IMG/VR virus record: IMGVR_UViG_3300020473_000013 | Span: 1-64,000 of that record | DNA length: 64,000 bases | Direction: 5' to 3' (one strand) | Shown: piece after piece, positions 1,419 through 44,636 of the stretch | Layout of the letters: each line of letters opens with the position of its first letter | Position numbering within the stretch: position 1 is the stretch's first letter | Made by a program: the position numbers and the translations under genes | The notes under the pieces: model-generated | What the model was told of the DNA's origin: nothing | Database searches by the model: none | What the model saw: only the letters and a program-made list of their open reading frames with translations

Positions 1419-1427
1419 GGTATTCTC

Positions 1428-1895: not shown

Positions 1896-1905
1896 ACACT
1901 TCCTC

Positions 1906-2205: not shown

Positions 2206-2214
2206 TGGTTACTC

Positions 2215-2499: not shown

Positions 2500-2514
2500 G
2501 GTGCGCTCCTCGTG

Positions 2515-3147: not shown

Positions 3148-3150
3148 AGA

Positions 3151-3357
3151 TCAGTCCTTGGTTTCGATGCCTTGATCCTGCTTGTGCTTCTCCCAGTCCT
3201 CGGAGATTTCAGCCAGGAACTCGGCGATCTCCTCGTCGGTACCCTCGAAAGGATGCTCCTTGCCGCGCTCCTTGAGGCGACCCGCGACGAACTTGCGGTA
3301 CTCCTTCTGGGCTTTGGAGAGTTCTTGCTTCTTGGCGAGTGCGATCTGAATTTCCAT
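3151..3357 (-). CDS. Small charged hypothetical protein
   Basis: Start moved to MEIQIALAKK (ATG 3357) after AGGAG; TAATTTC motif upstream. Confidence 0.65.
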   Translation of the reverse strand: MEIQIALAKKQELSKAQKEYRKFVAGRLKERGKEHPFEGTDEEIAEFLAEISEDWEKHKQDQGIETKD

Positions 3358-3387
3358 TGTTGGTGCTCCTATGTGGGTTAGCGTAAT

Positions 3388-3394
3388 GAAATTA
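3388..3394 (-). promoter_or_regulatory. TAATTTC variant of putative late-promoter motif
   Basis: Intergenic, about 30 nt upstream of ATG 3357. Confidence 0.35.
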
Positions 3395-3403
3395 TCGTTT
3401 TCT

Positions 3404-4381: not shown

Positions 4382-4382
4382 A

Positions 4383-8504: not shown

Positions 8505-8517
8505 AGGTCTGCACCTT

Positions 8518-8548
8518 AAAAGAAAAGGGGGTGATAGACACCCCCTTG
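8518..8548 (-). terminator. Intrinsic terminator
   Basis: Minus strand AAGGGGGTG-TCTAT-CACCCCCTT followed by TTCTTTT, just after the 8576 stop. Confidence 0.7.
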
Positions 8549-8575
8549 TGGATCGTACGGCTTATCGGATGCTGC

Positions 8576-9652: not shown

Positions 9653-9662
9653 TGTGATGCTC

Positions 9663-10457
9663 CTATTCAATGGCAGTGTACGTGATGGTCACGGTTGGAG
9701 TTACCGGAAGATTGCCGAAGTTGGTGATCCTCCAGTAGATGGTTTCGCTAACGGGGTCTTCCGTGTTCGCAGCAAACCCGTAGCGGCGGGTGAACTGGAT
9801 CGAGCCGTCCGACAGCAGCCGTGAGCCGTCATCAAACAACTGACCAGGTCTGGACTTGAAGGTATACGGGTTCGACTCTCCGTACGAGGGGTCGCCGTAA
9901 GCCTCTACCTGAACCTGCGGTACGTCAATCTCCACGTTCAATAGGATGTTGGTACGCCCCATCATCATGGAAAAATCGAAGCTCTCGGAGGGGCCAAGAG
10001 CTTCCGGCACCGTTTTAGATACCGTAGATCGAATACCCTGTCCCGGGTTGGCGGACATCGGGTCCCAGATTGGCATTTTGTCTGCATTCAATCTGAGAAC
10101 ATCACCCGTGTTGCCTTCCTGAGGAAGCGTGCGCCCTTCCTCAACTGTGAGGTTGCCGTCGGCGTCGATTACCAGAGGAGCACTGATATTCTTGATCTGA
10201 CTGCTAGCACCAAGAACGCCCATGTCCTCGAATACACCGTCCGACTGTAGCTGGTGCAGGTGATTGTCGCTCTGCGTAACGACGATCATGCCTGTCACTC
10301 GGGCACCCATCGGAATTGCTGACGGGTTTTCGCTGAGAGGTTGCAGGTAGGATTGGTCGGGAACCACTCGGAGGCCGCCGCGTAAATCCGTGTCTCGCAT
10401 GAGAAACGGAATTGCCGGGTTAGCTTTCACGAAGAAGCTAGTTACCGTAACAGGCAT
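9663..10457 (-). CDS. Probable virion fibre-associated protein
   Basis: DLRGGLRVV...IPMGARVTGMIVVTQSDNHLHQL resembles a recurring phage fibre motif; AGGAGG RBS. Confidence 0.65.
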   Translation of the reverse strand: MPVTVTSFFVKANPAIPFLMRDTDLRGGLRVVPDQSYLQPLSENPSAIPMGARVTGMIVVTQSDNHLHQLQSDGVFEDMGVLGASSQIKNISAPLVIDADGNLTVEEGRTLPQEGNTGDVLRLNADKMPIWDPMSANPGQGIRSTVSKTVPEALGPSESFDFSMMMGRTNILLNVEIDVPQVQVEAYGDPSYGESNPYTFKSRPGQLFDDGSRLLSDGSIQFTRRYGFAANTEDPVSETIYWRITNFGNLPVTPTVTITYTAIE

Positions 10458-10494
10458 GTTTCCTCCTAACGTGAGGGTGAGTTCCTCACTCGCT

Positions 10495-11586
10495 CTAAAT
10501 TAGTCTAAACTGCGACGCTACGGGAGCTGGTCGGTTCGTCGTGGAGTCGTCCCCAAGCTGACCGTAGTCGTTCTTACCTGTTGCGTAAACGCCATCCTTC
10601 TGCAGGATGAGCAGGTGATTTGTTCCGTATGTCGCTCGAACCACATCGGATAGCGGAATCTGGAACGGCGTGGAGCGATCATCCTGCGTACCGTCTCCGA
10701 TCTGGCCATACTGATTGCGGCCGACCGTCAACAAGACACCGCTCGACGTTAGGAACCCTGTGTTGTTGCCGAAGCACGTTAGGCCCGCGATGTTCGACAG
10801 TCCCGAGTCAGTAGGCTGCACGACGGAGAGGTCAGTATGGCCTAAGCCGAGCTGGCCGAAGTAGTTGTAGCCGCACACAGTAACAGTCCCGTCAGTGTGG
10901 CGGAACACGGAGTGCGAAGCACCTGCAGCAATCTCGGCTACATCGGTTACGACAGTCGGAATGATGGCGGTGGAGTTGTCGGTGAACCCAGTGGCTAGCT
11001 GGCCGAAGTAGTTGTAACCGACAGCTCTTACAGTGCTGTCATCCATCAGGAATAACGTGTGAGAACCACCTGCGGCAATATCGACCACACCGTTGATAGA
11101 GACATCGACAAGAGAAGGTCGGTTAGATACGGTGCCGTCGCCGAGTTGCCCGAAGTAGTTGTAGCCGCAAGATCGGACACGCCCGTCGGCATGGAGGAGT
11201 AGAGTATGGTTGCTTCCACAAGCAATCTTCTTTACACCTGTGGCGATCTGGACTGGTAGCGAACGGTTGTCTGTGGAGTCGTCTCCAAGCTGCCCGTAGT
11301 TGTTACGTCCGACAGACTTCACGGTACCGTCTTCGTACAGCGCGACTACATGCTCCGCGCCGCTGACGAGTTGAACCACGCCTTGCCCGAATCCGGATAC
11401 CGAATCAGGACTGAGTACGTTTGTCTGATTGCCGGTAGCTAGTTGGCCGTATTGGTTGAAGCCCGCTGCGCGAACAAGAGGAGTGGATTCACGATCCTGA
11501 TAGAACACACTGTGGTTGTTACCTGCCGCAAAGTGGCTCAGGTCAGGAGGGTTAGCGAGGAAGGATGAAACGAGAATCAGAGGCAT
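10495..11586 (-). CDS. RCC1/BLIP-II-like seven-bladed beta-propeller protein
   Basis: About seven ~50-aa repeats of IAAG..H.L.L..DG.V...G.N.YGQLG.G. Confidence 0.92.
   Translation of the reverse strand: MPLILVSSFLANPPDLSHFAAGNNHSVFYQDRESTPLVRAAGFNQYGQLATGNQTNVLSPDSVSGFGQGVVQLVSGAEHVVALYEDGTVKSVGRNNYGQLGDDSTDNRSLPVQIATGVKKIACGSNHTLLLHADGRVRSCGYNYFGQLGDGTVSNRPSLVDVSINGVVDIAAGGSHTLFLMDDSTVRAVGYNYFGQLATGFTDNSTAIIPTVVTDVAEIAAGASHSVFRHTDGTVTVCGYNYFGQLGLGHTDLSVVQPTDSGLSNIAGLTCFGNNTGFLTSSGVLLTVGRNQYGQIGDGTQDDRSTPFQIPLSDVVRATYGTNHLLILQKDGVYATGKNDYGQLGDDSTTNRPAPVASQFRLI
10496..10502 (-). promoter_or_regulatory. TAATTTA putative late-promoter motif
   Basis: Overlaps the end of the RCC1 gene, about 40 nt upstream of ATG 10457. 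Confidence 0.45.
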
Positions 11587-24604: not shown

Positions 24605-25669
24605 CTATAGTCGCGTGATTATCACCTTACCGTGGCCAGGGTTGGCTCCCGTCTGGTTCGTTTGATTACTGCCGGAGTTATAACTACCACCACCTCCACC
24701 TAACTGGTGGTTCGCTCCTGCACCTCCAGAGTACCCGCCACCTCCTGCTCCGCCTCCGGAACTACCGTGCGTAGCTCCGCCTCCTCCAAAGCCTCCATCC
24801 GCAGGACCTTGATAGCTGAGGCCGTAACTCCTATAGATTGTCTGTCCTCCTAGTCCGCCATATCGGAAGGCTCTGGGGCCAGGAGATTTTGTATAGTTGC
24901 TGTGAGAGGAATTTCCGTAAAATCCAGCCCCTGGCTCACCACCCTTGGTATCGTTTAGCGATCCTGCAGCGCCTCCAGACCCTCCTCGACCAAAACCCGA
25001 CGGGCTAGAGTCCCCACCCTTGGTTGAGTTCAATCCGTGCTGTCCGTTTCTAGCTGACCGGCTGGAGTTATCCATACCTCCGCCCCCTCCAGCTATAATC
25101 AAAGGCGAAGAATTGCCGGGGCTTGACCCTATCGCAACGAACGTGCCTCCTCCGCCCGCTGCGGAGTTGTGGTCAGACCGTTCGTAGTCTCCGTCCCCTC
25201 CTCTTTGTCCTACGAGAAGAAGCAATGTGTCTCCTTCCTCTAGCTGAAAATCGCCGGCCATCTTGGCGCCAAGTCCCCCTGTTCGGAGTCCGGACCCTGT
25301 CATCCCTGCTCCACCTTGAGCTCCGCAAACTTCTATCCTATACATGCCTGTGATAGGCACTGTCCAGTATTGGATGCCTCCTTCTACCTTAAAAAGCGAA
25401 GTGTCGTCTACCCAATCCACGCCCGCGTAAGCATTCCTACATTGAGTAAGAGAGGGTCCTGTGCGACCTGAGGCCCCAGCAGCAGTGAACATGTGGTAAT
25501 CGAAGTTGTACAGACCGCGTAAAGGAAGCGGTACCCACGCGTCACCGCGCCCCACACCCAGACCATTCTGCCCGACGCCGAGTTGGTTGTTTTTCACACT
25601 GACCGTCTTACTCGGAATGGTTAAACTTCTCAGGCTCCCTCCTACCAACTTTACCCTATCGTGTTCCAT
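24605..25669 (-). CDS. Array member: N-module plus ALK/LTK-like Gly-rich domain (subfamily B)
   Basis: Start moved to MEHDRVKLVGGSLRSLTIP (ATG 25669). Confidence 0.78.
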   Translation of the reverse strand: MEHDRVKLVGGSLRSLTIPSKTVSVKNNQLGVGQNGLGVGRGDAWVPLPLRGLYNFDYHMFTAAGASGRTGPSLTQCRNAYAGVDWVDDTSLFKVEGGIQYWTVPITGMYRIEVCGAQGGAGMTGSGLRTGGLGAKMAGDFQLEEGDTLLLLVGQRGGDGDYERSDHNSAAGGGGTFVAIGSSPGNSSPLIIAGGGGGMDNSSRSARNGQHGLNSTKGGDSSPSGFGRGGSGGAAGSLNDTKGGEPGAGFYGNSSHSNYTKSPGPRAFRYGGLGGQTIYRSYGLSYQGPADGGFGGGGATHGSSGGGAGGGGYSGGAGANHQLGGGGGSYNSGSNQTNQTGANPGHGKVIITRL

Positions 25670-25680
25670 AGTAACGATCT

Positions 25681-26661
25681 CTACATATTTTCGTGAACGA
25701 AAAACACCTTTCCTGTCAAGGGGTTGCGTACTAACGCGGGCCATCCTATGCGTTCACTCAGTTTATCAGAGGATTCGCCCCATTGTCCGTTGGCTCCACT
25801 AACCAGCCTGTTACTCTCCATACTAAAGAGGCGCTGGGCCGAGTCAGGTTGTTGTACATTCAAGTAGGTCGATCCGCTCTGACTGTACGTATAAAATCCG
25901 TAGCGAGCCTTTCCTGCGAACATAGATAGCTCGGGATGCTCGCCCAAATCCAATGTCAGAGGACCTAATTCAGCACTCGTATTGTACTGAGTGGCGGTCA
26001 CGGTGAAAAGGTTGCCTTGTCGAACAATACGAACGTCAGACCACCTTCCAGACCATCTGGAATATGTGGAAGCATTGATGCCTGCAAGCTCAGTACGCCC
26101 GCTGCTCACCGCCGGATTATAATACGATAGAGCGAACGAACTTCCAGGGATACCTCCTTGGTGCCGAGTAACTAGCAGCATGTGCGGGTTACCGTCAACG
26201 ATGACGGCAGCCATTACCAGGCCTATCATGTCGTCGTCGCTGTTATTCGACGTGAGGCGCGCGGAGAACTCATAGGCTTCGTACTGGTACAGGCTTAGGA
26301 TGGCGTTCGGGGTACCTACGTTTGTCGGCATGACAAAAGACCCGATTCCTTCATCGTAATACCAATCGTCCGCGTACCCTCCGTAGTTCGATCCCGCCTC
26401 ATAGAAGGTAGAACCGTGAGTACGCGGCCATGTATCAAACACGGTTTTCAGACCCGGCGCCGGATTATCCGCCATATACTGGTCTAGTTCGGCATCTGAC
26501 TCAAAAACAAACTCATCGAATTGAGGAAGTTCTTGCAAGGGAAAGGAAGCCAAGCGACCGTTGCTAAACGCCAACTTGTTGCCCGCTTGTACGTCGGGAG
26601 GGCTTTGAACAGTGGGCACTTCCATGTTCTCCATTTTTGTACGCGCCTGCTCGATTATCAT
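25681..26661 (-). CDS. Array member: divergent N-module plus lectin-like domain shared with the 1096-aa protein
   Basis: Start moved to MIIEQ (ATG 26661, ATGA overlap); NSDDDMIGLV motif. Confidence 0.72.
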   Translation of the reverse strand: MIIEQARTKMENMEVPTVQSPPDVQAGNKLAFSNGRLASFPLQELPQFDEFVFESDAELDQYMADNPAPGLKTVFDTWPRTHGSTFYEAGSNYGGYADDWYYDEGIGSFVMPTNVGTPNAILSLYQYEAYEFSARLTSNNSDDDMIGLVMAAVIVDGNPHMLLVTRHQGGIPGSSFALSYYNPAVSSGRTELAGINASTYSRWSGRWSDVRIVRQGNLFTVTATQYNTSAELGPLTLDLGEHPELSMFAGKARYGFYTYSQSGSTYLNVQQPDSAQRLFSMESNRLVSGANGQWGESSDKLSERIGWPALVRNPLTGKVFFVHENM

Positions 26662-32542: not shown

Positions 32543-33388
32543 TTAGGTTATAGGAAGAACCCGGGCGTTTCCGATAACGGGAATTGCAAAATGCAGCTTC
32601 AGGTTGTCTGCATCGACAAACTCCGTTCTGCTGGGCCAGACGATCTCATCGCCCTCCGTTACCTGAATCTGAAGGTCAGTGCTGTTCAGCGAGTGAGGAA
32701 TGACCCAAATTTCCGCGGGCTCTGTCTGAGCATGGGCGTATCCTTTAGAGCTTGAGGTCTGCTCCAGTGTTGTGGTGCGTGATCGCAAGTTGGTGAGCTG
32801 AGAATTGAAGTTGTTGAACCTCTGGTTGAGCGATACGGCGAGCTGCGCGATAGGGTTGAACAGGCTGCGCACCCACGATCCTGGTACGGCCTCATCATTC
32901 CCGTAGCTTTCACCTTCTTCGAGAATCCGTGTACGCAGCGGACCTTCCATTGTGTCGCCGGATTTATCCAAAGCCCCGATGTCACCCGGCAAGGTTCCGT
33001 GTGCGTTGCCTACCAGCGTCGCGTGGTCGTACAAGTCCTGATTGTCAGGCTCGGGAAGGTCCCAATACTGCTCGTCGAATACGCGGACCAGATTGGTCTC
33101 CTCGTACCACGAATGTTGATAGATTCCTCCTGCCGACCGCGACGAGCGGCGCATCAGCTTTCCGAAGTCGGGGCTAGACGCTTTCGATACGCGCCACAGG
33201 ACATTCAGAGGGGACGTGACATCATAAGGCTCATCATCAGACACCACCACTTGTATAGGCTCGTATGATGTCTGTGATGTCTTGAAAGTGAGGATTACCG
33301 GCTTCAGGTAGGACTGACCGCGAGCTTCCGCTGCGGCATCTACCCGAGATAGGAACTGCGTGAGTGTGTCGAATATCATGGCATTCAC
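32543..33388 (-). CDS. Virion/fibre-associated protein with C-terminal W.I.HSL domain
   Basis: LDKSGDTMEGPL fibre motif, coiled segment, HAQTEPAEIWVIPHSLN domain. Confidence 0.72.
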   Translation of the reverse strand: MNAMIFDTLTQFLSRVDAAAEARGQSYLKPVILTFKTSQTSYEPIQVVVSDDEPYDVTSPLNVLWRVSKASSPDFGKLMRRSSRSAGGIYQHSWYEETNLVRVFDEQYWDLPEPDNQDLYDHATLVGNAHGTLPGDIGALDKSGDTMEGPLRTRILEEGESYGNDEAVPGSWVRSLFNPIAQLAVSLNQRFNNFNSQLTNLRSRTTTLEQTSSSKGYAHAQTEPAEIWVIPHSLNSTDLQIQVTEGDEIVWPSRTEFVDADNLKLHFAIPVIGNARVLPIT

Positions 33389-33389
33389 C

Positions 33390-33905
33390 TCAACGTTGGA
33401 CCATGGTGCGTTCGATCATCTGCGCGCTCAGGAGTTCCGACTTGGCATCAGCCCGAACCTGATTTACAGCACTAGCGACCTCTTTCAGGGTCTCGACACC
33501 GACAGAAACCATGACGATCTGACCTTCCTCCACGCACTTGACCTGGAACTCGTCCTGTACGCCCGCTAGATGTAAGGCCAAGCACTGGGTGAGGTGTGCG
33601 CTCGCCTCGTCGTCTGCACAGTAGAACGTGTCGTTTACTTGAACGCCCGAACCGATACGCTCCTCGTACTCACGCTGAGCGACGAACCCTTCGGAAGGGG
33701 CGCGGATAACGCGGGGGCGGTGTTCCAGCTCCTCGCGCTCAACGTTGACCGAGTACTCCGTAGGACGCTTGACGATCTGGGTTCGCTGCTGCTCCGTGAT
33801 AGAAACACTCGGATTCGGAATGATAGGATGCCGCCGAGAGTTGTACAGCCCGAGGATGGCGCCGGTCTCGGCATCGTAGTGGGCGAAGTGCTTTTCGTTT
33901 TTCAC
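33390..33905 (-). CDS. Putative tail-fibre assembly chaperone (DUF4376-like)
   Basis: Probable GTG start 33905 after GGAGAG; AHYDAETGAILG N-terminus and helical C-terminus; similar architecture to 41451..42041. Confidence 0.55.
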   Translation of the reverse strand: MKNEKHFAHYDAETGAILGLYNSRRHPIIPNPSVSITEQQRTQIVKRPTEYSVNVEREELEHRPRVIRAPSEGFVAQREYEERIGSGVQVNDTFYCADDEASAHLTQCLALHLAGVQDEFQVKCVEEGQIVMVSVGVETLKEVASAVNQVRADAKSELLSAQMIERTMVQR

Positions 33906-33906
33906 G

Positions 33907-34713
33907 TTACTCTCCGAGAAGGAACCAATAAAAATCCCAACCTGTAAGCGGCACAAGTTGGGTACCTCCAGCGCCGTCAGGCTCAAGCGCTATCATGTTC
34001 TTGTTAACTGCCAGAACCGCGTAACCCTGCTCGATCTTCTCCACCCGCACCTTGTACGCCACGTTGCCCGCAGGATTGACCCACTGCATGACGAATGACT
34101 TAGGCTTATCCAGAGCGGTGAGCGCTTCCGGGAACATCACCTGCTTGATCTCCGCAGGTTGGTTATCCGTGAATCGCCCCCACTGCATAATGCGCCCGTT
34201 GGATACACTCTCGGAGCTGCCGTCCTCGGTAGACGTAAGCTCTGGGGTCTCACCATCGAAGCCTGAGTTGCCTTGCTCGCCCGCTGGACCCGTGGGGCCG
34301 GTAGGCCCTGGAATGCCGCGAGGGCCGGTAGGTCCCTTGGGGCCTGGAGGACCCATAGGACCGATGTCCCCTTTAGGACCGGCACACCCGGGAACACCCG
34401 GGCGACCGTCACGACCATTACGCCCGCTGGGGCCAGCAGCTCCGCGAGGACCAGTAGCGCCTCGCGGGCCTACACCGATATTGTGAACGGTCATAAACCC
34501 GCTCACCTGCACGATGCTGTTATCTGCGCGGTAGAGGTTTAGCACCCCAACCTCGGGATCGAACTCCCCGCGCGTTACGAAGTTATCGTCCTCCCCGGCG
34601 GAACCGGGCGTCTGAGCTTCCACCTCGCGGCCGTTAAACACGACATCATCGTTGGGCCGGGCTTGATCACCCGGGTCCAACATCGAGAGTGGTACTTTCG
34701 TTAGGTTTCCCAT
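33907..34713 (-). CDS. Collagen-like fibre protein (25 Gly-X-Y) with gp53-like C-terminal domain
   Basis: Probable start [12 protein letters not shown]; [12 protein letters not shown] motif; [12 protein letters not shown]-domain. Confidence 0.82.
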
Positions 34714-34722
34714 GCTAATCAC

Positions 34723-34893
34723 CTATTGAACAGGGAGCCACTGGGAGTTATCCGCGCTCCGTATTTTCGTGTTGGCTCGCGTCATCTGAATCCAACGGGA
34801 ATTGTCAGCGGAACGAACCTTCCATCCGAAGTTCGAGAAATTTTCGATCCACTTACTTGTAGGAGTCTCACGGACTCTGAGTTTGACAGCCAT
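34723..34893 (-). CDS. 56-aa Trp-repeat mini-protein (not in ORF track), homologous to the N-terminus of the 1096-aa protein
   Basis: Hand translation MAVKLRVRETPTSKWIENFSNFGWKVRSADNSRWIQMTRANTKIRSADNSQWLPVQ*; fills the intergenic gap exactly. Confidence 0.8.
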   Translation of the reverse strand: MAVKLRVRETPTSKWIENFSNFGWKVRSADNSRWIQMTRANTKIRSADNSQWLPVQ

Positions 34894-34897
34894 CAGT

Positions 34898-37800
34898 TTA
34901 CCCCTTCCTGACTACTCTGCGGTACACCAGATAGCGCGTGTCAGTCTCTGGGTTTGTGATCCTACGAGGCCACTCAAGATACTTGCTGAACCACTCCGTA
35001 TCGCCTAAGTAAACCCAGTTACCGTTTTGCGCTTCCCAAATCTTATTGGTCTCGACACTGTACACCCGACCGTCGGCCATTGGCTGAATAATACCTTTGA
35101 AGGTAGAACTAGCCTGGCTGTGAGTGTAGTATCCGTACCGCGAACTACCTGCGAACTTGGCCGTACGGCTGTCGTCGTTGAAGTTGAAATTATTAGTCTG
35201 GAAGGACCCGCCTCCGAACCGTTCACAATCAACGATCAAGCTATCGCCGGAGCGTCGCACAGACACCCTACTCGATTTACCTTCCCATGAACCGGAGGTA
35301 TCGCCTTCTCCCCAGTCCTGAATCACAACGGGAGCGTTAACCCCATCGTAGTAGATCAGCCCGAAGCCGCTTCTCGGAACTTGGCCACCTTGGCTGCGTC
35401 CTACTACCAGCAGGTGAGGAATACCGTCAACCACTTTGGCGCCAACGACAAGACCGATAGTGTCATCGTCATTATCGCTGGACGTTAGTACGGCATTGAG
35501 GCCGTAAGACTCCAGCTCGTTAGGACTGAGGATGGAGTTAGGGCTAGCCGTGTTCGTCGGCATGACAAACGATCCAATACTGTCATCGAAGTACCAGTCG
35601 TCGCCTTCGCCTGATGCGTCTCCTGCAGTCGCGTAGTAGTTAGGACCGTCAGTACGAGGCCAGGTGTTAAAGATGCCTTTGACACTAGGCGCAGGATGGT
35701 TGCTCATGTAGTTGTTGGCATCAGCATCATTATCGAACACCAGACCTTGCGCCTGAGGCATACGAACCGCATTGCCTGCACCGAGGGCATTATCCGGCTC
35801 GAAGTAGGCGCCCCGCCAGTCGTCAGACGTGATAAGAACCACTCTACCTGTTCCCGTGTCCGTGATCTTCATATTGAGCCAAGACGGAGTGTTATCTGGG
35901 ATGTTCTCCACCAACACATAGATAAAGTAGGTACCGGGTTCAACGCTCAAGGACTCCGTAACTACGTCAGGAAGCTGGAGCGTCGCAACGTGGTTAATTG
36001 GTCCTCCTTCAGGCACAATAAAGACGGAAGCAAGGTCGTCAGCTACACCTGCAATCTCGATGTTTCCACTTGTGGTGTGAAACATGTTGACAACCATGAA
36101 AGCGCGGTTCCCTGCAACGATCTTGTCGGCCTCGATACTGATTTGATACGCACCGTCTCCAACTCCGCCCGCCCCAGGAGGACCAAAGGCTGTCATCTTG
36201 CTGAGACCTTGCGTAAATCGCTCGAAGCGCATACCTGAGGAAAGGTGCTCGATAGGACAGTGAACGGTCTGGCGCCAGTAACTGGTGGAGCCAGGACTGG
36301 ACACCTCTAACTGATCCAAGCCAGTGGCAGGAACGGGGAAGCCGCCGTAACCACCTTCTTCCCAACGTAGCGTCGGAACAACGGTGTCGTCAATCAGCAA
36401 ACCATCACCCTTCACTTGAATGCGATTAGGAGCGCCATTTGGTGGAGCCACGCCTGCTGCTGCCGTGGCGTACTCGACCAGAGCGTACTCGTTATTGCCA
36501 GCCGCTCCTCCAAAGTCACTGAACACGGAACGATCTTCCTCACCGGACCACGGCTTACCACATTCAACACTGGTGGTCGGACACTCTACCAAGAACGACC
36601 ACGATGTCTCTCCCGAGCCCTCAACGCGCACTACAACCTCACGACCCGCTGCTGGGTCGTAGGAGAACTCGATTGAGCTTTCCTCTGCAACGGGGCCTTT
36701 TGTGTACGCCACCAGGTTCTCGTTCTGGTAGACGGTGATAGTGTCGGGAATGTTGTACGTCTGGTACCGCACACGAACGTTACCTGGCTCGTCGCCCAGA
36801 TCGTAGTAGGTATCGGTTCTACCGGCACCTCCGCTCTCCGTCACACCGTGCTCATCACCACACCATTTAGGGTGATTAGGACGCCCGTTACCAGGGCTGC
36901 CCGTACCAGTCTTACCTGTAGCGTCAACGCAGAACAGGTAGTAGGTGAAGGCCCCTGTAGGCAGTTTGTGGTGTATACGGAATCGAACCTCTGTATCACC
37001 TCCGGCAGAGTCGGGATCGTAGTCGAACTCTATCGGCTGACGGTAATACATAGAGACGTAACCGTCGGTCTTGTAGATGGTATTACCACCATGGATGACC
37101 TCAAGCATAACGTCTTCGTTAGAGGAGTAGTCATAGGTGATGCCGCGCATTTCAATCACGCCGGCTTCCGTACCCATGTCATGAATGCGCTCCTCTACGA
37201 GGTGATCCCCGGTAGCGCTGCCATCGAACACGCCACGGCAAGCAAACAGTTGGTCAGCGTAGTCGTCACCGGGACAGCCCAACTTGTAGTAGAAGGCACC
37301 TTCGCGATTACCTTCGACTTCTACGCGGACAATACCATCACCTTCAACGTCAGTAGACCACGGGAATGTCACGAAACCGCGGGGTTGGGGCTCTCCCGTT
37401 TTGCGGACTAGCTTAGGCGTTTCGGCAAGTAAATCACCTTTGTAGAAAACGCGAATCTGGGTGGTGCCGATAGTACCGATGTAGCGCAGATAAACATTTC
37501 CGTCGTTCTTGGGGAGGCGATGGAAGTAGCTGCGTTTCTCCTGATAGTCTGGATCGGGCATCATGCGGAACATCATGTCGGTAACGGACGTGTTACACCC
37601 GTAGGGAGAACTTCCACTGCCTGAGCCACCGCTGCCAGCAGCGTCTCCTCCTCCAACGCCTCCGTAGTTTCCTCCGCCTCCGGAGCCGCCACCACCAGAG
37701 CCACCTGAACCTCCTGAGCCTCCCCAGTTAGTTCCTCCGCCCCAACCGCCGACGCCACCATTGCCATATCCACCACCCCAGCCACCTTGGCCCCAAGGGT

Positions 37801-38188
37801 AAGTCGAACCGTGGCCCCAGCCGGAACCCCATGATATACCGCCACCCCAAGGACCGCCTGATCCCCAGTAGCCACCACCCCAGTTTCCCCACGGGTCGCT
37901 GCCACCTCCAGGACCTCCGGCGCCACCATCGGGGCCACCTAGGGACGGTCCGGACCCGTTCTCGCCTGTACCGTCGGGCGTACCTCCGTACTCATCATCG
38001 CCGCAGGGGTCCTCCGACAAACAGTCGATATTGACCCAGTAGTTATTGGTACCGTGGCGCGCCTTCATCCCGTGAGAAGGCAGCAAACGCCGCCAACCGT
38101 CGTTAGCAGCGTTACGCACGTACCACTCAGACTGGCAGATGTCGAGCCAGTCGCTATTCAATGGATTCCGTATGCGTAAGCGACCCAT
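34898..38188 (-). CDS. Multidomain adhesin/receptor-binding-like virion protein
   Basis: N-terminal Trp-repeat module, Gly/Trp-rich linker, several Cys-terminated beta domains, C-terminal lectin-like domain. Confidence 0.75.
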   Translation of the reverse strand: MGRLRIRNPLNSDWLDICQSEWYVRNAANDGWRRLLPSHGMKARHGTNNYWVNIDCLSEDPCGDDEYGGTPDGTGENGSGPSLGGPDGGAGGPGGGSDPWGNWGGGYWGSGGPWGGGISWGSGWGHGSTYPWGQGGWGGGYGNGGVGGWGGGTNWGGSGGSGGSGGGGSGGGGNYGGVGGGDAAGSGGSGSGSSPYGCNTSVTDMMFRMMPDPDYQEKRSYFHRLPKNDGNVYLRYIGTIGTTQIRVFYKGDLLAETPKLVRKTGEPQPRGFVTFPWSTDVEGDGIVRVEVEGNREGAFYYKLGCPGDDYADQLFACRGVFDGSATGDHLVEERIHDMGTEAGVIEMRGITYDYSSNEDVMLEVIHGGNTIYKTDGYVSMYYRQPIEFDYDPDSAGGDTEVRFRIHHKLPTGAFTYYLFCVDATGKTGTGSPGNGRPNHPKWCGDEHGVTESGGAGRTDTYYDLGDEPGNVRVRYQTYNIPDTITVYQNENLVAYTKGPVAEESSIEFSYDPAAGREVVVRVEGSGETSWSFLVECPTTSVECGKPWSGEEDRSVFSDFGGAAGNNEYALVEYATAAAGVAPPNGAPNRIQVKGDGLLIDDTVVPTLRWEEGGYGGFPVPATGLDQLEVSSPGSTSYWRQTVHCPIEHLSSGMRFERFTQGLSKMTAFGPPGAGGVGDGAYQISIEADKIVAGNRAFMVVNMFHTTSGNIEIAGVADDLASVFIVPEGGPINHVATLQLPDVVTESLSVEPGTYFIYVLVENIPDNTPSWLNMKITDTGTGRVVLITSDDWRGAYFEPDNALGAGNAVRMPQAQGLVFDNDADANNYMSNHPAPSVKGIFNTWPRTDGPNYYATAGDASGEGDDWYFDDSIGSFVMPTNTASPNSILSPNELESYGLNAVLTSSDNDDDTIGLVVGAKVVDGIPHLLVVGRSQGGQVPRSGFGLIYYDGVNAPVVIQDWGEGDTSGSWEGKSSRVSVRRSGDSLIVDCERFGGGSFQTNNFNFNDDSRTAKFAGSSRYGYYTHSQASSTFKGIIQPMADGRVYSVETNKIWEAQNGNWVYLGDTEWFSKYLEWPRRITNPETDTRYLVYRRVVRKG

Positions 38189-38200
38189 AGCAGTTCCTTA

Positions 38201-38704
38201 TCACGGTCTGATCCAGAGAGCACCCGCGCCCACAGCGCCGGGGTCTTCCGTCTGAATGTAGATGTCCACCTGCCCAGTATCACCTTTGATGCCGTCTGCA
38301 CCACGGGGCCCGGGAGGCCCTTCAGGTCCTTGAGGCCCCATATCACCGCGAGGCCCTGTAGCGCCAGGGGTTCCGGGCGGGCCTTGGCAGCCAGGAGGAC
38401 CTTGAAGGCCGTCCTGCCCTAACAGACCGTCAGTACCGTCAGTACCGCCTATGCCTTGGGGACCTGCGGGACCCATACCGATGCTGCTCTGGGTCATGAA
38501 GCCGCTGATCTGTAGCTTCTGGCCGTTGACGAGAGTGATGGTGAGGATACCAGTCGTGTCGTCAAAGTGACCCGACTTCAACCCCGTGTTGTTTAGATTC
38601 TCGTCCTCTTCCGCTGTAACCTCTTCACCGTTGTACCGAATATCGGAATCAGGTCGACCGCGAGACTCCAGCATGGAAAGCGGCGTGCGTGTCAATCCAC
38701 CCAT
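38201..38704 (-). CDS. Collagen-like fibre protein (23 Gly-X-Y)
   Basis: [12 protein letters not shown]; [12 protein letters not shown]; ends [15 protein letters not shown]. Confidence 0.85.
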
Positions 38705-38877
38705 GGGTCACCCTCCAGTTTCTTATCCATCCTTTTCTTCTCCTCTCGAAGCACTCTGTCCAGCTCCGAGCGTGTTAATCGGAAGCGCTTGCATGTTAGG
38801 CAGGCTCCGTTCAGCTCGACGCAAATGGATTGTGCGGAATCGTATCGCCATTTGCGTTTGCACTCTGGGCATTGCAT
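38692..38877 (-). CDS. Small Zn-finger-like protein
   Basis: CPEC...C...CLTC; GAGGTG RBS. Confidence 0.65.
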
Positions 38878-38899
38878 GAATCACCTCACTTTGTGGCGG

Positions 38900-39586
38900 C
38901 TAGGGCCATGGGGTCCCAATCGGAGGGTCCGTAGGAGGGTTGCTACCTCCACCACTGCCGCCGCCGTCATTTGGGTTGCCGTTAGGGTTAACCCAGAGCA
39001 CTCCGCCTCCTGCAGCGCCAGGGTCAGTGGTAGACACAATAATGCGCACTGACCCGTCGGGGCCAGGAGGACCGGCGGGACCTTTAGGCCCTCCTTCTCC
39101 CCTAGGTCCTGTGGGGCCGACAGGACCGATATCACCTGTTCTACCCTTCGGTCCTACACGCCCTCTTGGGCCTGTCATACCGCGAATACCAGGAGGGCCC
39201 TGCATGCCGCGTCTCCCATCTGGGCCCTTTGGACCCTGCATGCCGCGTTCACCTTGAGGACCCTCACAGCCTTGTTCACCTGGCGCACCGTCTTTACCCG
39301 GCTTACCTGGCTTTCCATCTTGACCTCGCGGACCTTGAGGACCTGTCGGACCTCGAGGAATCTTGTCTGCGGTGGGAAAACCCGTAACACTGACCCTCTG
39401 TCCGTTTTTCATGCGAAGAACCAGAGTGCCCAATATGGGATCGAAAAATCCGTTTTCGACTTCTGATATAGGGGCCTCGTTAGGGGGCTCCAAATTCAGC
39501 CTTTCCTCTCGAACGACCAACTCTGTATCAGGGTCTGTGTCAGGAGCGCTGATCTGGTCTATCTGGGGCCGCGTTAATCCGACCAT
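38900..39586 (-). CDS. Collagen-like fibre protein (33-34 Gly-X-Y, basic)
   Basis: Start moved to MVGLTRPQ (ATG 39586) after AGGAGG. Confidence 0.85.
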   Translation of the reverse strand: MVGLTRPQIDQISAPDTDPDTELVVREERLNLEPPNEAPISEVENGFFDPILGTLVLRMKNGQRVSVTGFPTADKIPRGPTGPQGPRGQDGKPGKPGKDGAPGEQGCEGPQGERGMQGPKGPDGRRGMQGPPGIRGMTGPRGRVGPKGRTGDIGPVGPTGPRGEGGPKGPAGPPGPDGSVRIIVSTTDPGAAGGGVLWVNPNGNPNDGGGSGGGSNPPTDPPIGTPWP

Positions 39587-39624
39587 GTGAAATTCCTCCT
39601 GTAGCCAATACCGGCACATCGCCG

Positions 39625-40695
39625 CTATTTGACTAGGGTAAGAGTAGCGGCAGTACCTCCGTTGATAAACAAGGCGTTATTTATGCGCCAGCGGGGATCG
39701 CTTCTATCCAAGGTCATGTCCCGAGCTTCACCACTTGGCACTTTCACCGATTTGTACAGTGTCTTCCCAGGCCAGTCGAAGTAGAGCTTCATGGTCAAGG
39801 TATTACCGCCTGCGGAATTGTACAACCTAAGCGTGGTGATCGGATCATCACAGCAGTCCATGGGCACGTTGAAGATCATGCCGTCTCCTTCACCTTCGCT
39901 GTACTGAGAGGTGTCGTACATGGCGTGCTGCATTTCCGAACCTGCGATCAGGAACCCCTTGCAGTTGAATGCGATCCCACCAGCAGGATTTCCTGTACTT
40001 GGCTTGTAACAATGCACAGGGGCGGGCTCCGGCTCGGGACCGGGTGTCGGATCAGGCGGAGGAACGTAATCGTCCTCAGGTTCTGGTTCCGAGGAGTCTA
40101 CCCAGAGAGCACCCGCGCCTACGGCTCCAGGGTCTGTATCAGACACTATGATGTTCGGCATACTTTCCGGACCCGCTGGACCCGCCTCCCCTGCAGGACC
40201 GGGGTCGCCACGAGGACCAGTAGGACCTTCGGGACCCGTTACGCCTTGAGCGCCTTTCGGGCCAATGGGTCCTCGAGGACCAATAAGCCCTCTCAAGCCA
40301 GGAGGTCCCTGCATACCTTTTCGCCCGTCTCGACCAGGAGGCCCTTGAGGACCTCTGTCTCCCCTAGGACCCTCACAACCCTCTTCTCCAGGAGAACCAT
40401 CGCGACCTCTATTACCGGGAAGCCCGTCTGCGCCCCGTTGACCCTGAGGGCCTGTGGCACCTGTAGGAATCTTGTCCTCTGTCGGGAATCCCGTAATGCG
40501 AAGTTGCTGTCCGCTTTGAAGCTGTAGCCGAAGCACACCCATGACAGGATCAAAGTGGCCAAACTCTATCTCGGAGATAGATGATTCGTTCGGCACCTCC
40601 AGGCTTAGCTTCTTCTCACGGACAACAATATCTGTTGCCTTGTCTTGACCTTGAGCGTGGATCAAACCGACCACAGGTCTTGTTAACCCTGCCAT
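39625..40695 (-). CDS. Collagen-like fibre protein (33 Gly-X-Y) with C-terminal globular domain
   Basis: MAGLTRPVV; [12 protein letters not shown]; [13 protein letters not shown], then a Pro/Glu linker and a Cys-containing domain. Confidence 0.85.
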
Positions 40696-40704
40696 ATCTT
40701 TCTC

Positions 40705-41460
40705 CTACTGTGGTACGGCCCACATCACGGCACTGTCACCAGGGTCGGAACGTGAGATAACAGTGGTGGCATTCACTGTCTTGCCCGCTGCGCCTTGTGC
40801 GCCTTGTCCTTCGTTGATACAGTCAGGACCTTTCTGACCGCGCGCACCCTCGTGTCCGTATCGACCTTGATCACCCTGGACACCTTGGAGACCGACTTCG
40901 CCTTCCTGACCGATAGGACCTGCAATACCATGAGGACCGTCTTCTCCAGGATCACCCATCGGGCCGATTAGGCCAAGCTCGCCGGGAGCGCCGGGGCAGC
41001 CTTTCTCGCCGTCAAGCCCGTCCTCACCGTCATCACCGTCGTGCCCATCGTAACCGCGTTCCCCTTTAGGGCCTGTCGCACCGATACCAAAGTCACTCTG
41101 TACGAAGAAGTCGTGAACCTGCACAACGTCCCCGTTACGGCGAACCAGATTGAGAGTGCCAGACTCTGCGTTGAACGCGGCCTCCACTATCAGACCGTCG
41201 TTCACAACTTCTCGGGTTGTGAACTCAACATCGTCTTCCTGGGTGTCGCGTTTGGCCGACTTTCCTTCTAGTTCCCTGCCAAAGGCATCGAACTGATCCA
41301 CGTGCAGCGAGGTCAAAGGATCGCCACTCGTCAGGGGTTTGAGGCGATCCTCGACCTTCGATGCGTCGTTCACAAGGATGTTCTGACCGATTGGAACGTT
41401 GCTGTCATTCCCCTCGTATAGATCGGATAGGAGCTTGCTCTCCTTGATTCCTATGTCCAT
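40705..41460 (-). CDS. Collagen-like fibre protein (acidic)
   Basis: AAFNAESGTLNL motif, 29 triplets plus interruption plus 3 triplets; ends SDPGDSAVMWAVPQ. Confidence 0.85.
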   Translation of the reverse strand: MDIGIKESKLLSDLYEGNDSNVPIGQNILVNDASKVEDRLKPLTSGDPLTSLHVDQFDAFGRELEGKSAKRDTQEDDVEFTTREVVNDGLIVEAAFNAESGTLNLVRRNGDVVQVHDFFVQSDFGIGATGPKGERGYDGHDGDDGEDGLDGEKGCPGAPGELGLIGPMGDPGEDGPHGIAGPIGQEGEVGLQGVQGDQGRYGHEGARGQKGPDCINEGQGAQGAAGKTVNATTVISRSDPGDSAVMWAVPQ

Positions 41461-42041
41461 GATTCCTCCCTCATTTGTTGCAGGGCATGTTGTTCGATAG
41501 CCCGCACCTCCTTGGAAGTCTTAGCTTCCTCCATGCGGATAAACGCTCCGGCGCGAGCAAATCGAGCGATGTTATGGACTGTCAGGACACGCTGGGCGGC
41601 GGCAGCAACCTCGTCAGGGCTGAGGAGAAGTAACTCACCTTCAGGAGACATAAGCGCAGCCGTGTCCGCACACTGAGCCGCGATACTAAGCAACGACAAG
41701 TCCCGATCCGCCAGCTTGAGCGTGAACGTCTCTCCGTGTGTCACCGTCACACAGGTTGTTACCTCGCGGAAGGCCTCATTGAGACGGGAGCAAACGGTGC
41801 GCTTCAATACCTCAACGTTCTCACCGTCACACACCAGATCGCCATGAACAAACCTGTACTGGATGCCTTCCTCCAGTCCTGCGACCACAGTGTCGTAGAG
41901 GCTTTGCGGAACAACGATGTCGCCTTCGCTTAGGTTGGGCGAGGCATCCCCGGACAGGCGTTGAGAGTCGGTGCCAATAATGACACCGTTCTCACCCGTG
42001 TGAAGGATATGAACCAGACGAGCGTTATGCGTGCCGTCCAT
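41451..42041 (-). CDS. Putative tail-fibre assembly chaperone (DUF4376-like)
   Basis: Similar architecture to 33390..33905; directly downstream of the tail-fibre gene. Confidence 0.55.
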   Translation of the reverse strand: MDGTHNARLVHILHTGENGVIIGTDSQRLSGDASPNLSEGDIVVPQSLYDTVVAGLEEGIQYRFVHGDLVCDGENVEVLKRTVCSRLNEAFREVTTCVTVTHGETFTLKLADRDLSLLSIAAQCADTAALMSPEGELLLLSPDEVAAAAQRVLTVHNIARFARAGAFIRMEEAKTSKEVRAIEQHALQQMREESWT

Positions 42042-42051
42042 GATAATCCCC

Positions 42052-44373
42052 TTACTTGATCAACGGAGACCCGATGATGTTGAAGTTCATGCCTAGCTTG
42101 GAGCCGTACTTGGAAATATTGGCGTGACGAACACGCATACGAGCCACGATGTCGATATAGCCTGCGGGAATGTTATCCCTCACCACGTCGAACACCTGGG
42201 TCAACGAGGCGTTGCTGAAGGCTCGTTCGTTGGTGTTACCGCTCAGGCTACTGAACCCTGCTTCGCCTGTACCTTTGATGTCACGCCCATAGTCAGGCTC
42301 TCGGCTTGAGGTCGTGCGGAAGCCGATAACATACTGCATGAGCTCCATGCCATCAGGACTGATGAAGCCAGGACCAAGAACGGCTGAGAAGTCTACCGAC
42401 ACCTGAAGCATGAGGTCGCTCGTCAGGTTGACGCGGTATGTGTAGATGATCTCCTCAGAGTCCTCTTGGCGACGAAGTGTGCTGACCTTGAAGTTGGTGG
42501 TCTCATTGAACTGTTGAGCCAGCGTGCTTTCGATCTTATAGACAGGATGCTGCCCGCTCACTTTGATGCCGTTTCCAGCTACCAAATCGACAGTTGGAAT
42601 AGGCAGGACGACAGGGTGCGTGTCATGGCGCAACAACTTGAGAGACTTGGACGTGAGTACCGCGTCCGTCACAACGCCCTTCAGGTTAGACTGAGGAGTT
42701 CCATCGCTCAAGATATTGTGGAAGACCACAACCTCGATCTCCAGACCGCCGCGCGCCGCGCTACTGAGCACCACCTTGTTGTCCACCACGGTATACAGAT
42801 CGCGATGGATGTGAGTACCACTAATGGATACGAAGGTGTGGTCCTTTGACTGCGGCTCAACGGGCAGCTCTACGAACAGCGTATCGCCTACGGTGATGAC
42901 AGTCGTGCTCAGGACGGTCGTGCTGTAACCTTCCTCCTGACGTAGCACCAAAGAGGAAAACTCAATACTCAGACCTTCCGAGGGCGGACTGACGAACACG
43001 ATCTCCTGCGTAGACGGATCGTAAGTGTACGACGTGGTAGCCTGAAGCAGGCCCCGGATATACGAGAATACGTACTCCGAGCTTTCCACAGGCTCGCTGA
43101 GCTTGAAGCGCCGCTTCTCACCATCCCCGATGTACGAGTCCGTCACGATCTCGGTGTAGGTACCCGAGCCAGGCTCCTTGGTGATGAGGCGTGCGTCGAT
43201 GGATGCGTGAGGAGGAATGGAGTCAGCGAACTCCAGTTCCGATCCTGTCACGTCATACGCCGACTTGTGCTGCGTTACACCACCTAGCGCGGTGATGCAG
43301 TGGTTGACGTCCTTGAGCACCACGTTTCCTAAGGAGTAGCGATGCGACTGGCCAGTACCAACATCGTTGAGCGTGCTGATGCGCAACTTACCCGGAGATA
43401 CGTACAGGGTATTCATGTTCTGGCCAGTGTTTCTAGGCGGAGCCCAGACAGGCAGATTGCCTACGCCACGGGTTAGCACCCAGTCAGGAGGAACGCCGGC
43501 CATCTTTGGAGGGTACTCAGCGCCACCATTGGTGCTACCCTCGATGCGACGCCAGATCGCTATGACACCTCCCTCGTCTAGCCCTGCGACGGGCACCCCG
43601 TCCTTATCGACAAAGGAGTCCGTACCCATGACGTAGTAGAACTTGCGGGATGCGCCTCGTGCAGGACCCGAGATGACATGCGCGATCACCACTTCGCCAT
43701 TACGAAAGCGCATGGCAGCGGTCAATGCTTCGACGCGAAACTCCTCGCCTGTGGCACCAGCGTCGGGATTGCCCGAGAACACACGATCAAACCCGCAGAA
43801 CCCCCAAAGCAGAGAGCCCGGCCCATAGCGAATAGCATAGCCCGGACTCGTGGTTCCATCGGAGTTGTCGATCATGTTCAGGACTGCGAGCGTGTTGCAG
43901 TACCCTGTTTCAGGATCAGGAAGGCGATCCACCGACGGAGTTGAAGGCAAGCTGGCCAGCTCGCCCATGTTCACGTTGATGACGCCGGGATCGACACGGG
44001 TGGTTACCAACACCGCGTGCAGGCGGGCTCCACGCTTCTCATGCAGGAAATAAGGCTGCTCGAATACGCACCGGCCGAACATCAGGTTATCGTCCATGAA
44101 CAGGCCGACTTCGCGAATGTAGAGACCGTCTTCGGGGATAGCGTGGTCGGGCAGCTCGAAGGTGAACCGAACCGCGTGCGTATCCAGGACCTCGATAAGG
44201 TAGATGCTTCCCTTATAGAGTGTTTCGCCTCGGATGTCCTCGTCGGTGTCCCGCGTCTGTTCGCTGGAATCGCCCAGCTTGAATGTGACGACGTTGATCA
44301 GGACCCCACCTTTCTTCGCATTGTTAGCTGCGCGAAGGCCGAGGTCCGTGATGTGGATGACGTTATCTCCCAT
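42052..44373 (-). CDS. Baseplate-attached tail-fibre proximal protein
   Basis: Probable start MGDNVIHITDLGL (ATG 44373); ITDLGL...IREVGLF N-terminal fibre-attachment pattern; repeated GDG....F.L beta modules. Confidence 0.72.
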   Translation of the reverse strand: MGDNVIHITDLGLRAANNAKKGGVLINVVTFKLGDSSEQTRDTDEDIRGETLYKGSIYLIEVLDTHAVRFTFELPDHAIPEDGLYIREVGLFMDDNLMFGRCVFEQPYFLHEKRGARLHAVLVTTRVDPGVINVNMGELASLPSTPSVDRLPDPETGYCNTLAVLNMIDNSDGTTSPGYAIRYGPGSLLWGFCGFDRVFSGNPDAGATGEEFRVEALTAAMRFRNGEVVIAHVISGPARGASRKFYYVMGTDSFVDKDGVPVAGLDEGGVIAIWRRIEGSTNGGAEYPPKMAGVPPDWVLTRGVGNLPVWAPPRNTGQNMNTLYVSPGKLRISTLNDVGTGQSHRYSLGNVVLKDVNHCITALGGVTQHKSAYDVTGSELEFADSIPPHASIDARLITKEPGSGTYTEIVTDSYIGDGEKRRFKLSEPVESSEYVFSYIRGLLQATTSYTYDPSTQEIVFVSPPSEGLSIEFSSLVLRQEEGYSTTVLSTTVITVGDTLFVELPVEPQSKDHTFVSISGTHIHRDLYTVVDNKVVLSSAARGGLEIEVVVFHNILSDGTPQSNLKGVVTDAVLTSKSLKLLRHDTHPVVLPIPTVDLVAGNGIKVSGQHPVYKIESTLAQQFNETTNFKVSTLRRQEDSEEIIYTYRVNLTSDLMLQVSVDFSAVLGPGFISPDGMELMQYVIGFRTTSSREPDYGRDIKGTGEAGFSSLSGNTNERAFSNASLTQVFDVVRDNIPAGYIDIVARMRVRHANISKYGSKLGMNFNIIGSPLIK

Positions 44374-44384
44374 TTCAGGCTCCG

Positions 44385-44636
44385 TTAGTCGTTGATAGGC
44401 AGCGGAAGGGATACGCGGCACGGATCACAGTAGAAGACTTGCTCGCCGTCAGCACTAGCCAATCCCATCTGAGTGCCACACTTCGGACACTGGCCTTCAA
44501 CGTCCAAAGCCATAGCTCCGGCAGTGGCTTCCATGCTCTCATTGCTCGCTTTGCGAGTCTCGGTCTGAGAGGGCTCCGAAGAGCCCCACAGGTTGAGAAT
44601 GGTGCCGCCGGACGGAAGTTTAGATTCGTGTACCAT
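44385..44636 (-). CDS. Small zinc-ribbon protein
   Basis: Start moved to MVHESK (ATG 44636); CPKC...CDPC. Confidence 0.7.
   Translation of the reverse strand: MVHESKLPSGGTILNLWGSSEPSQTETRKASNESMEATAGAMALDVEGQCPKCGTQMGLASADGEQVFYCDPCRVSLPLPIND

Follow-up and report, generated by a model that had tools for sequence, protein, structure and literature searches.

Here we analysed five collagen-like genes carried on the minus strand between positions 33,907 and 41,460 of a 64,000-nucleotide stretch of viral DNA (positions 1 to 64,000 of the 224,853-bp IMG/VR record IMGVR_UViG_3300020473_000013; hereafter the window). Judging by sequence and synteny, these genes encode the collagen-stalked tail fibres of a PaBG/Lu11/Y3-like jumbo myovirus, and we refer to their products as chains A to E in order of ascending coordinates. 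On balance, and with modest confidence, the best explanation of the comparative data is that the acidic chain E and the basic chain C form a heterotrimer, probably of two C and one E, and that A, B and probably D form homotrimers. Chain selection would rest on opposite charges at two kinds of interchain contact, those between the Y residue of one Gly-X-Y triplet and the X residue of the same triplet, Y(n)-X(n), or of the next, Y(n)-X(n+1), and E would be kept from pairing with itself by like-charge repulsion. The stricter version, in which E and C form an obligate mixed helix, probably with two C and one E, whose chain choice and register reside in charge pairs that have moved, and even reversed polarity, repeatedly in phage evolution, each time in E and C together, we regard as evenly balanced between right and wrong. 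The family was already known, only as annotated tail fiber proteins; a mixed C/E helix would be what is new. The literature searched contained no bacterial or viral example of a natural heterotrimeric collagen, and the C/E heterotrimer, if true, would be the first natural one outside animals.

Five collagen-like chains on a common anchor module

The five chains are built as follows (aa, amino acids; nt, nucleotides; ORF, open reading frame).

40705..41460, minus strand: E-type chain, 251 aa; 45-aa N-extension, N-domain, 29 triplets (nt 40822-41082), DPGDSAVMW tail; acidic
39625..40695, minus strand: D-type chain, 356 aa; N-domain, 33 triplets (nt 40165-40461), DPG..LW motif, ~150-aa C-terminal beta-rich domain
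38900..39586, minus strand: C-type chain, 228 aa from the probable start M12 (ORF to 39619, 239 aa); N-domain, 34 triplets (nt 39047-39352); basic
38201..38704, minus strand: B-type chain, 167 aa; N-domain, 23 triplets (nt 38267-38473)
33907..34713, minus strand: A-type chain, 268 aa from the probable start M4 (ORF to 34722); N-domain, 25 triplets (nt 34246-34470), C-terminal beta-sandwich (aa 163-267)

All five match the Pfam Collagen family (PF01391) with 50-60 bits against a gathering cut-off of 27.2, and the triple-helix repeat was left unstructured in an AlphaFold2 (AF2) monomer model. Alignment of the paralogues was used to choose the starts of A and C, the true ones likely being M4 (MGNLTK) and M12 (MVGLTRP), respectively. 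An earlier note on this DNA had described an N-domain motif, (G/A)xF(D/N)xxxGxLx(L/I)...(G/D)F, which we indeed found in every chain, and parsing of the triplets reproduced its further readings: G-x-D at triplet 7 (GRD, GQD, GKD, GRD and GED in A to E); G-C-x at triplet 10 (GCA, GCQ, GCE, GCE and GCP; Cys codons at 34384-6, 38387-9, 39266-8, 40375-7 and 40996-8); 25, 23, 34 and 33 triplets in A, B, C and D, and 29 in E with a two-triplet interruption that keeps the register; and Lys/Arg versus Asp/Glu counts of 15 versus 9 in C, 12 versus 11 in D and 6 versus 18 in the 29 triplets of E. The interruption of E reads CIN-EGQ, two in-frame triplets without the leading Gly, the Cys occupying the Gly position of triplet 30, and is followed by three triplets, giving a span of 34. 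The helix of C is followed by the DPG..LW motif, a Gly-rich linker and a conserved C-terminal ...PPIGTPWP. The statement that four chains end in DPG...(L/M)W was accurate as to the motif, which comes after the helix in all chains but A, and too broad as to its place, since it is terminal only in B and E (C continues for 30 residues and D for 158).

The Cys of triplet 10 (hereafter Cys-10) and the G-x-D of triplet 7 do not vary among 13 paralogues from the window, PaBG and Lu11, which are about 30-59% identical. The five chains have them in common by paralogue descent and not through five independent coincidences, and it is therefore their conservation, rather than their co-occurrence, that needs explaining.

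We compared ~25 non-redundant lineages (from IMG/VR, GenBank phages and assemblies), with a 789-aa protein encoded beside the set as synteny anchor. Identity of this protein among the lineages is only 30-47%, yet the helix-length classes are discrete and conserved. Four stalk types are old, namely E (29+5 triplets, total span 33-34), C (34), B (23) and A (24-25, with 44-53 in the A-type of Lu11-like phages), and every lineage examined has both an E-type and a C-type chain, equal in span. In E-type chains the 29 triplets are without exception followed by a Cys where triplet 30 would have its Gly, one more non-Gly triplet and three regular ones, and the 23-triplet B-type ends in ..ALW(V/I)(K/R)P. 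By triplet count the stalks would measure ~20 nm in B (23 triplets), ~21 nm in A (25) and ~29 nm in C, D and E (33-34). The ~78-aa beta-rich N-domain and the ten conserved triplets after it would dock the fibre on the baseplate and set the register.

Charges of E-type and C-type stalks vary together

Charge pairs were scored at the lateral Y(n)-X(n) contacts (weight 0.5) and axial Y(n)-X(n+1) contacts (weight 1) of a single triple helix, the geometry of which has been described (PMC7824840, PMC10797479, PMC11923368), with the trailing-to-leading pair shifted by one triplet; the score is a bare count that ignores Pro content, Arg-specific effects and polarity. Summed over 10 lineages, E and C from the same genome scored 104.5, compared to 57.4±8.5 for E with permuted C partners from other clades, and none of 20000 permutations scored as high. 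Six lineages fetched after the hypothesis had been formed gave 56.0 versus 28.2±8.4, the true pairing being the best of 720 permutations (exact p 0.0014). When each of nine clades was represented by a single lineage the values were 95.5 and 52.8±7.9, and the true pairing was the best of 362,880 permutations (exact p 2.8e-6). Control pairs (E-B, E-A, C-B, C-A and B-A) taken through the identical procedure yielded z values of -0.2 to 2.1. A within-genome triplet-shuffle test was dropped as evidence and replaced by the cross-genome permutation, as the chains share an ancestral G(K/R)D run and any shuffle thus lowers the score; applied to the window alone, the shuffle test showed no position-specific excess (p 0.14 and 0.37).

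Identity of X/Y residues was 0.23 in own pairs and 0.21 in cross pairs, and charges at identical positions were if anything less alike in own pairs. Since E and C of one genome thus resemble each other no more than cross pairs do, gene conversion or concerted evolution does not explain the E-C signal. Nor is the signal one of composition: the net charges of E and C correlate weakly (r -0.35), and the signal is therefore positional. Over 16 lineages z reached 5.7 at Y(n)->X(n) and 7.0 at Y(n)->X(n+1), the only contacts with a signal, compared to 0.3 at the n-1 offset and at most 2 for X-X or Y-Y pairs at equal height. This asymmetry between X and Y and between +1 and -1 argues for contacts within a helix, since helices lying side by side would not distinguish them. 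The E-to-C and C-to-E directions both peak at offsets 0 and +1, which is compatible with E as the middle chain and not decisive.

In the window's clade the complementary patch covers triplets 4-8, where the ancestral G(K/R)D run of triplets 4-7 has been split between the two chains, C keeping Lys at X (GKP GKP GKD) and E Asp at Y (GYD GHD GDD GED GLD). The patches shift by lineage: in one group (lineages L028-31) they lie at triplets 12-16 and 22-25, and in NCTB the polarity is reversed, E being basic and C acidic. Self-contacts are net repulsive for E in 10 of 21 lineages, for C in 1 of 21, and for B and A in none (0/19 and 0/12). Peptides with at least five like charges form no homotrimers, but do form heterotrimers with opposite partners (PMC7824840). 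Among the 27 combinations of the window's C, D and E chains, C-D-E (9.5) and C-C-E (8.0) scored best and EEE worst (-11.5), with DDD at 4.0 and CCC at 1.5. As the self-repulsion of E fits one E per helix, two C and one E would be the likeliest stoichiometry. Taken together, these comparisons put the claim that E and C share one triple helix at, or slightly on the favourable side of, an even balance.

Cysteines of the stalks

The earlier note had proposed that interchain cystines at triplet 10 align the heterotrimer, an idea that did not survive comparison with homologues. A profile built on the N-domain and 12 triplets of each of the five window chains was searched against 1.8 billion cluster representatives and the best 150 matches were examined, 74 of which carry the N-domain according to a hidden Markov model of that domain only. 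The first Cys lies exactly 28 residues into the helix in 66 of these 74 and one triplet earlier in one more, the search profile having included the Cys-10 column, which slightly favours sequences that retain the Cys. Cys-10 is lost in all six paralogues of one lineage (L034), in B alone in L032, in E alone in JA29, and in E and C together in L037. It is thus a family-wide feature, found also in presumed homotrimers, and because it occurs in chains of unequal length and is a single, outward-facing X residue in mid-helix, it is not the registrar of a heterotrimer. A disulfide within the helix at Cys-10 was rejected, the X residues at the same level being ~9 Å apart at C-beta by a geometric estimate not taken from coordinates. 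Known cystine knots lie at helix ends, as in the GPCCG of type III collagen and at the junctions of fibril-associated collagens with interrupted triple helices (FACIT). Their cysteines are paired at a helix end or interruption, whereas Cys-10 is single and in mid-helix in all chains, and the only Cys at a helix break is the second one of the E-type chains, at the Gly position of triplet 30. We infer that Cys-10 is an old feature of the shared anchor module, which would present an exposed thiol at a fixed ~8 nm from the N-domain. After release, this thiol may join the fibre to a neighbouring fibre or to a protein of the baseplate.

A further cysteine, at X of triplet 20 (Cys-20), is shared by E and C in 6 genomes and missing from both chains in 19, no genome being discordant, and corresponds to 2-3 changes on the C-type tree. 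In another lineage (L048; JGI 3300077322 contig, 6337-8014), E has Cys at X10 and a gained one at Y12, and C has Cys at X10 and gained ones at Y11 and X12, E carrying three more at triplets 27-30. The gained cysteines at Y12 of E and at Y11 and X12 of C occupy contact positions, so that the Y12 Cys of E would find a partner only in C, and those around triplets 10-12 may form a genuine interchain cystine knot.

Chains A, B and D

A single system of five chains, as the earlier note had it, was rejected on account of the conserved unequal stalk lengths: A (25 triplets) and B (23) each keep a clade-conserved length of their own, and each makes favourable self-contacts. B probably forms homotrimers. 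A is probably a homotrimeric receptor-binding fibre of an ordinary kind, because its C-terminal domain resembles the foot of a pyocin fibre. Foldseek aligned the modelled beta-sandwich (predicted local distance difference test, pLDDT, 65-83 over aa 161-268) with the R1-pyocin fibre foot (6cl5, E 7e-4; 6cxb, E 2e-3; probability 1.0) at low template modelling (TM) scores of 0.18-0.41 (0.41 by target) and 12-13% identity, and we treat this likeness as a lead, not as a membership. The stalks differ, that of the R-type pyocin fibre being a beta-helix and that of A collagen.

D is present only in the window, in L004 (a 73% relative with two copies, of 598 and 914 aa) and in L054. It is closest to C (59% identity over the N-domain and the first 12 triplets) and, by sequence, is a lineage-specific, recent copy of it. 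A search of the Atlas structures with its C-terminal domain returned weak jelly-roll leads only. The favourable C-D-E combination of the window is not conserved: in L004 and L054 the D-E contacts score -3.5/2.5 and -2, compared to 5/0 and 5 for D-D. As D-E is thus neutral or repulsive and D-D favourable in these relatives, D is more likely a homotrimer, probably a fibre in which a new distal domain has been fitted to the anchor and stalk of the C-type.

Alternative assemblies

Unlikely, in our estimation, is an arrangement of separate homotrimeric fibres in which E3 and C3 stand side by side, their N-domains anchoring them at equal height and their charges and cysteines serving lateral pairing, as in C1q or collectin bundles. 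Solved phage fibres, collagen-like ones included, are all homotrimers (e.g. gp68, 6v8i), and the X cysteines point outward, the 30 residues from Cys-10 to Cys-20 amounting to one 10/3 collagen pitch, which would put both on the same face. In the PaBG- and Lu11-like clades, moreover, E and C both score well as homotrimers and gain little from mixing, and the C-terminal parts of E and C differ (PaBG has a ~250-aa domain on E), which is awkward for one helix. Lateral packing nevertheless predicts a signal that is symmetric in offset and without X/Y specificity, unlike the one recorded, and a stable E3 is hard to reconcile with self-contacts that are strongly repulsive in almost half of the lineages scored. 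The earlier note's own model, an obligate A:B:C heterotrimer of the products of the genes at 38900, 39625 and 40705 (C, D and E) registered by triplet-10 cystines, we consider quite improbable. It has the top score in the window, and its three chains share span, Cys-10 and post-helix motif, but D is confined to the window's subclade, most relatives having only E and C at this length, and the D-E contacts of L004 and L054 speak for D-D. Cys-10, for its part, is as regular in A and B as in these three chains, has been lost singly in some chains, and lies away from the helix end where known knots are found. What stands of the proposed heterotrimer with complementary charges is the pairing of E and C, with their equal span, co-variation in contact geometry and self-repulsion of E; A and B fall outside it, and D is unproven as a third chain. 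That there is no interaction at all, the five chains being independent homotrimers and the E-C co-variation an artefact of paralogy, composition or lineage sampling, we hold to be very improbable. The confounding of the shuffle test by the shared G(K/R)D run, and the outcome of that test in the window, would fit such an artefact, whereas the cross-genome permutation is independent of the shared motif, held over nine clades and was replicated on lineages fetched later; own pairs did not exceed cross pairs in likeness, and other paralogue pairs handled in the same way gave little signal.

Several observations weigh against a C/E heterotrimer. Two have been given above, the good homotrimer scores in PaBG- and Lu11-like clades, on account of which heterotrimerisation may be facultative or lineage-specific, and the unlike C-terminal parts. 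Many E-C pairs have Asp at Y and Lys or Arg at X, the weaker orientation, to which the score is blind. The helix of E is broken at triplets 30-31, where C is continuous. The N-domains of E and C are only ~30% identical, their co-trimerisation being hypothetical. The lineages are related by a tree, hence the use of one lineage per clade, with clades that we defined ourselves. PDB sequence searches found no solved structure of a relative, and the case for C/E rests on sequence comparison. If the C/E heterotrimer is nonetheless true, it would represent a new tail-fibre principle, by which a stalk of three chains could carry a distal domain in a single copy, or mixed stalks could exchange partners. 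It would also offer a simple natural model of collagen chain selection and register, with short chains that lack hydroxyproline and can be expressed in E. coli, and a template for recombinant heterotrimeric collagen materials. As PaBG, Lu11, Y3 and JA29 are cultivable, the prediction is directly testable.

Relation to other collagens

The window set resembles C1q (A, B and C chains) and type I collagen, alpha1(2)alpha2, in its adjacent paralogous genes, equal helix lengths, one interrupted chain, conserved cysteines and interchain charge pairs that influence composition. In both of these animal proteins chain selection resides in globular domains or propeptides at the C-terminus and folding proceeds from C to N, whereas the domain shared here is N-terminal, hydroxyproline is absent and the case for a heterotrimer is a comparative one. 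The cysteines of C1q precede the helix, in contrast to the mid-helix Cys-10, and the collagen repeat is all that the window chains have in common with C1q and metazoan collagens, ancestry not being shared.

A parallel in mechanism is provided by designed, Hartgerink-type ABC and AAB peptides, in which a like-charged chain forms no homotrimer, axial Y-to-X salt bridges select the chains and the direction of the pairs sets the register (PMC7824840, PMC10797479). These are synthetic 30-mers with hydroxyproline, Lys at Y and Asp at X, whereas the chains considered here are natural, ~100 residues long and domain-anchored, with many of the pairs reversed. Akin to Scl2 of Streptococcus, BclA of Bacillus, EPclA of an E. 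coli prophage and gp68, the upper fibre of S. aureus phage 80alpha, they have a Gly-X-Y stalk without hydroxyproline that is stabilised by charge and Pro, flanked by a trimerisation domain and used as a spacer (PMC3368898, PMC7048315). Each of those proteins is, however, a one-gene homotrimer, compared to four or five paralogues on one anchor module here, two of them apparently co-assembling.

The fibre module and its neighbours

By protein-level search and synteny, the closest known kin of the window are PaBG/Lu11/Y3-like jumbo myoviruses; megablast found no nucleotide match to the region among phage genomes, PaBG included. The 789-aa flanking protein is 45% identical to PaBG gp243, annotated as a 'tail-collar fiber protein', with further matches in Lu11, NCTB and jumbo phages of Erwinia/Dickeya. 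Synteny extends over gp243-gp236 in PaBG and gp236-gp243 in Lu11. In PaBG, as in the window, the 789-aa protein is followed by a small protein, the E-, C- and B-type chains (gp241, gp240 and gp239), a large protein (gp238, ~1200 aa, compared to 1096 aa in the window), a 56-aa protein (gp237), the A-type chain (gp236), another small protein and one annotated as 'HNH endonuclease'. The core of this order (E, C, B, the large protein, the 56-aa protein and A, all downstream of the DUF4183 protein of 789 aa) recurs in PaBG, Lu11, Y3, NCTB, JA29 and ~20 metagenomic contigs. The fibres of the Pseudomonas phages PaBG (gp241, gp240, gp239, gp236) and Lu11 (gp238, gp240, gp241, gp243) and of the Erwinia/Dickeya phages Y3, JA29 and NCTB (phrog_8745/phrog_38766), annotated in the databases as tail fiber proteins, are orthologous to the window set and like it in gene order after the 789-aa protein, N-domain, length classes (29+5, 34, 23 and 25), Cys-10 and post-helix motif. 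Matches to phrog_8745 and phrog_38766 (1e-25 to 1e-34) span N-domain and helix. Compared to PaBG/Lu11-type sets, the window has the extra D paralogue, its E and C charges have diverged into acidic and basic partners, and its E-type chain is without the large C-terminal domain of PaBG gp241. A PDB sequence search matched the helix part to generic collagen only and gave no match for the N-domain or the 789-aa protein.

Lu11 and Y3, which belong to the window's lineage, are 'hairy Myoviridae' (PMC6143709). Collagen, heterotrimers and the conserved Cys go unmentioned in the text of the PaBG and Dickeya jumbo-phage papers (PMC7412058, PMC6143709), and the first 13 virion bands reported for PaBG, which comprise long tail fibre, wedge and sheath, include no collagen-like fibre (PMC7412058).

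A metagenome scan added five further loci. The 364-kb contig of L034, a distant and larger phage (GCA_005804565.1, contig SXGT01305675.1), carries at 1240-10618 six paralogues of the same N-domain and collagen design, with 51, 45, 29, 29, 32 and 33 triplets; two adjacent genes there have equal 29-triplet helices, one product being short (199 aa) and the other bearing a distal domain (478 aa), which echoes the C/E arrangement. The gene after the last collagen-like fibre of this contig matches PF16778 (Phage_tail_APC). Around the window's collagen set most neighbouring genes have no Pfam match; those of the module are listed below.

42052..44421, minus strand: 789-aa 'tail-collar fiber' protein (phrog_21488, DUF4183); first gene of the fibre module and synteny anchor
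41451..42041, minus strand: 196-aa protein between the 789-aa protein and E; syntenic with PaBG gp242
34898..38188, minus strand: 1096-aa protein of the distal fibre or virion, encoded next after B; PaBG gp238 orthologue
34723..34893, minus strand: 56-aa protein with three W-hairpin repeats, directly upstream of A; PaBG gp237 orthologue
33390..33986, minus strand: ORF downstream of A, up to 198 aa, true start probably later; syntenic with PaBG gp235

The last of these may encode a fibre assembly chaperone. The 56-aa protein consists of three W-hairpin repeats of ~18 residues (..LRVR......W...), a triple repeat that recurs at the N-terminus of the 1096-aa protein and is kept in PaBG gp237 and gp238. 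The AF2 model of the 56-aa protein shows beta-hairpins (pLDDT 77) and had no significant structural match in the PDB. In B, C, D and E the motif after the helix (IIVS.TDPG....LW) resembles a single W-hairpin of this kind in each chain; a trimeric cap with one hairpin from each chain may therefore have the same structure as a single-chain pseudo-trimer, perhaps the joint between collagen stalks and distal proteins. After its repeats the 1096-aa protein has a low-complexity stretch rich in Gly, Trp and Ser (aa ~60-200, GGxWG-like), which is not collagen-like, as the Gly residues keep no fixed triplet frame.

Between C and B lies a 61-aa ORF (38692-38877, minus strand) with a zinc-ribbon-like CxxC...CxxC pattern and no Pfam match, which overlaps the start of B by 13 nt; at this position PaBG has a 14-nt gap only. 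The 281-aa protein encoded at 32543-33388 (minus strand), inside the fibre module, matches phrog_24148 ('HNH endonuclease'), as does its PaBG orthologue; given its location and the absence of a Pfam HNH match, this annotation may be wrong. Farther away, a 379-aa protein encoded at 24605-25744 (minus strand) matches the ALK/LTK glycine-rich domain (PF12810; E 2e-8, above the gathering score), which is unusual in a phage.

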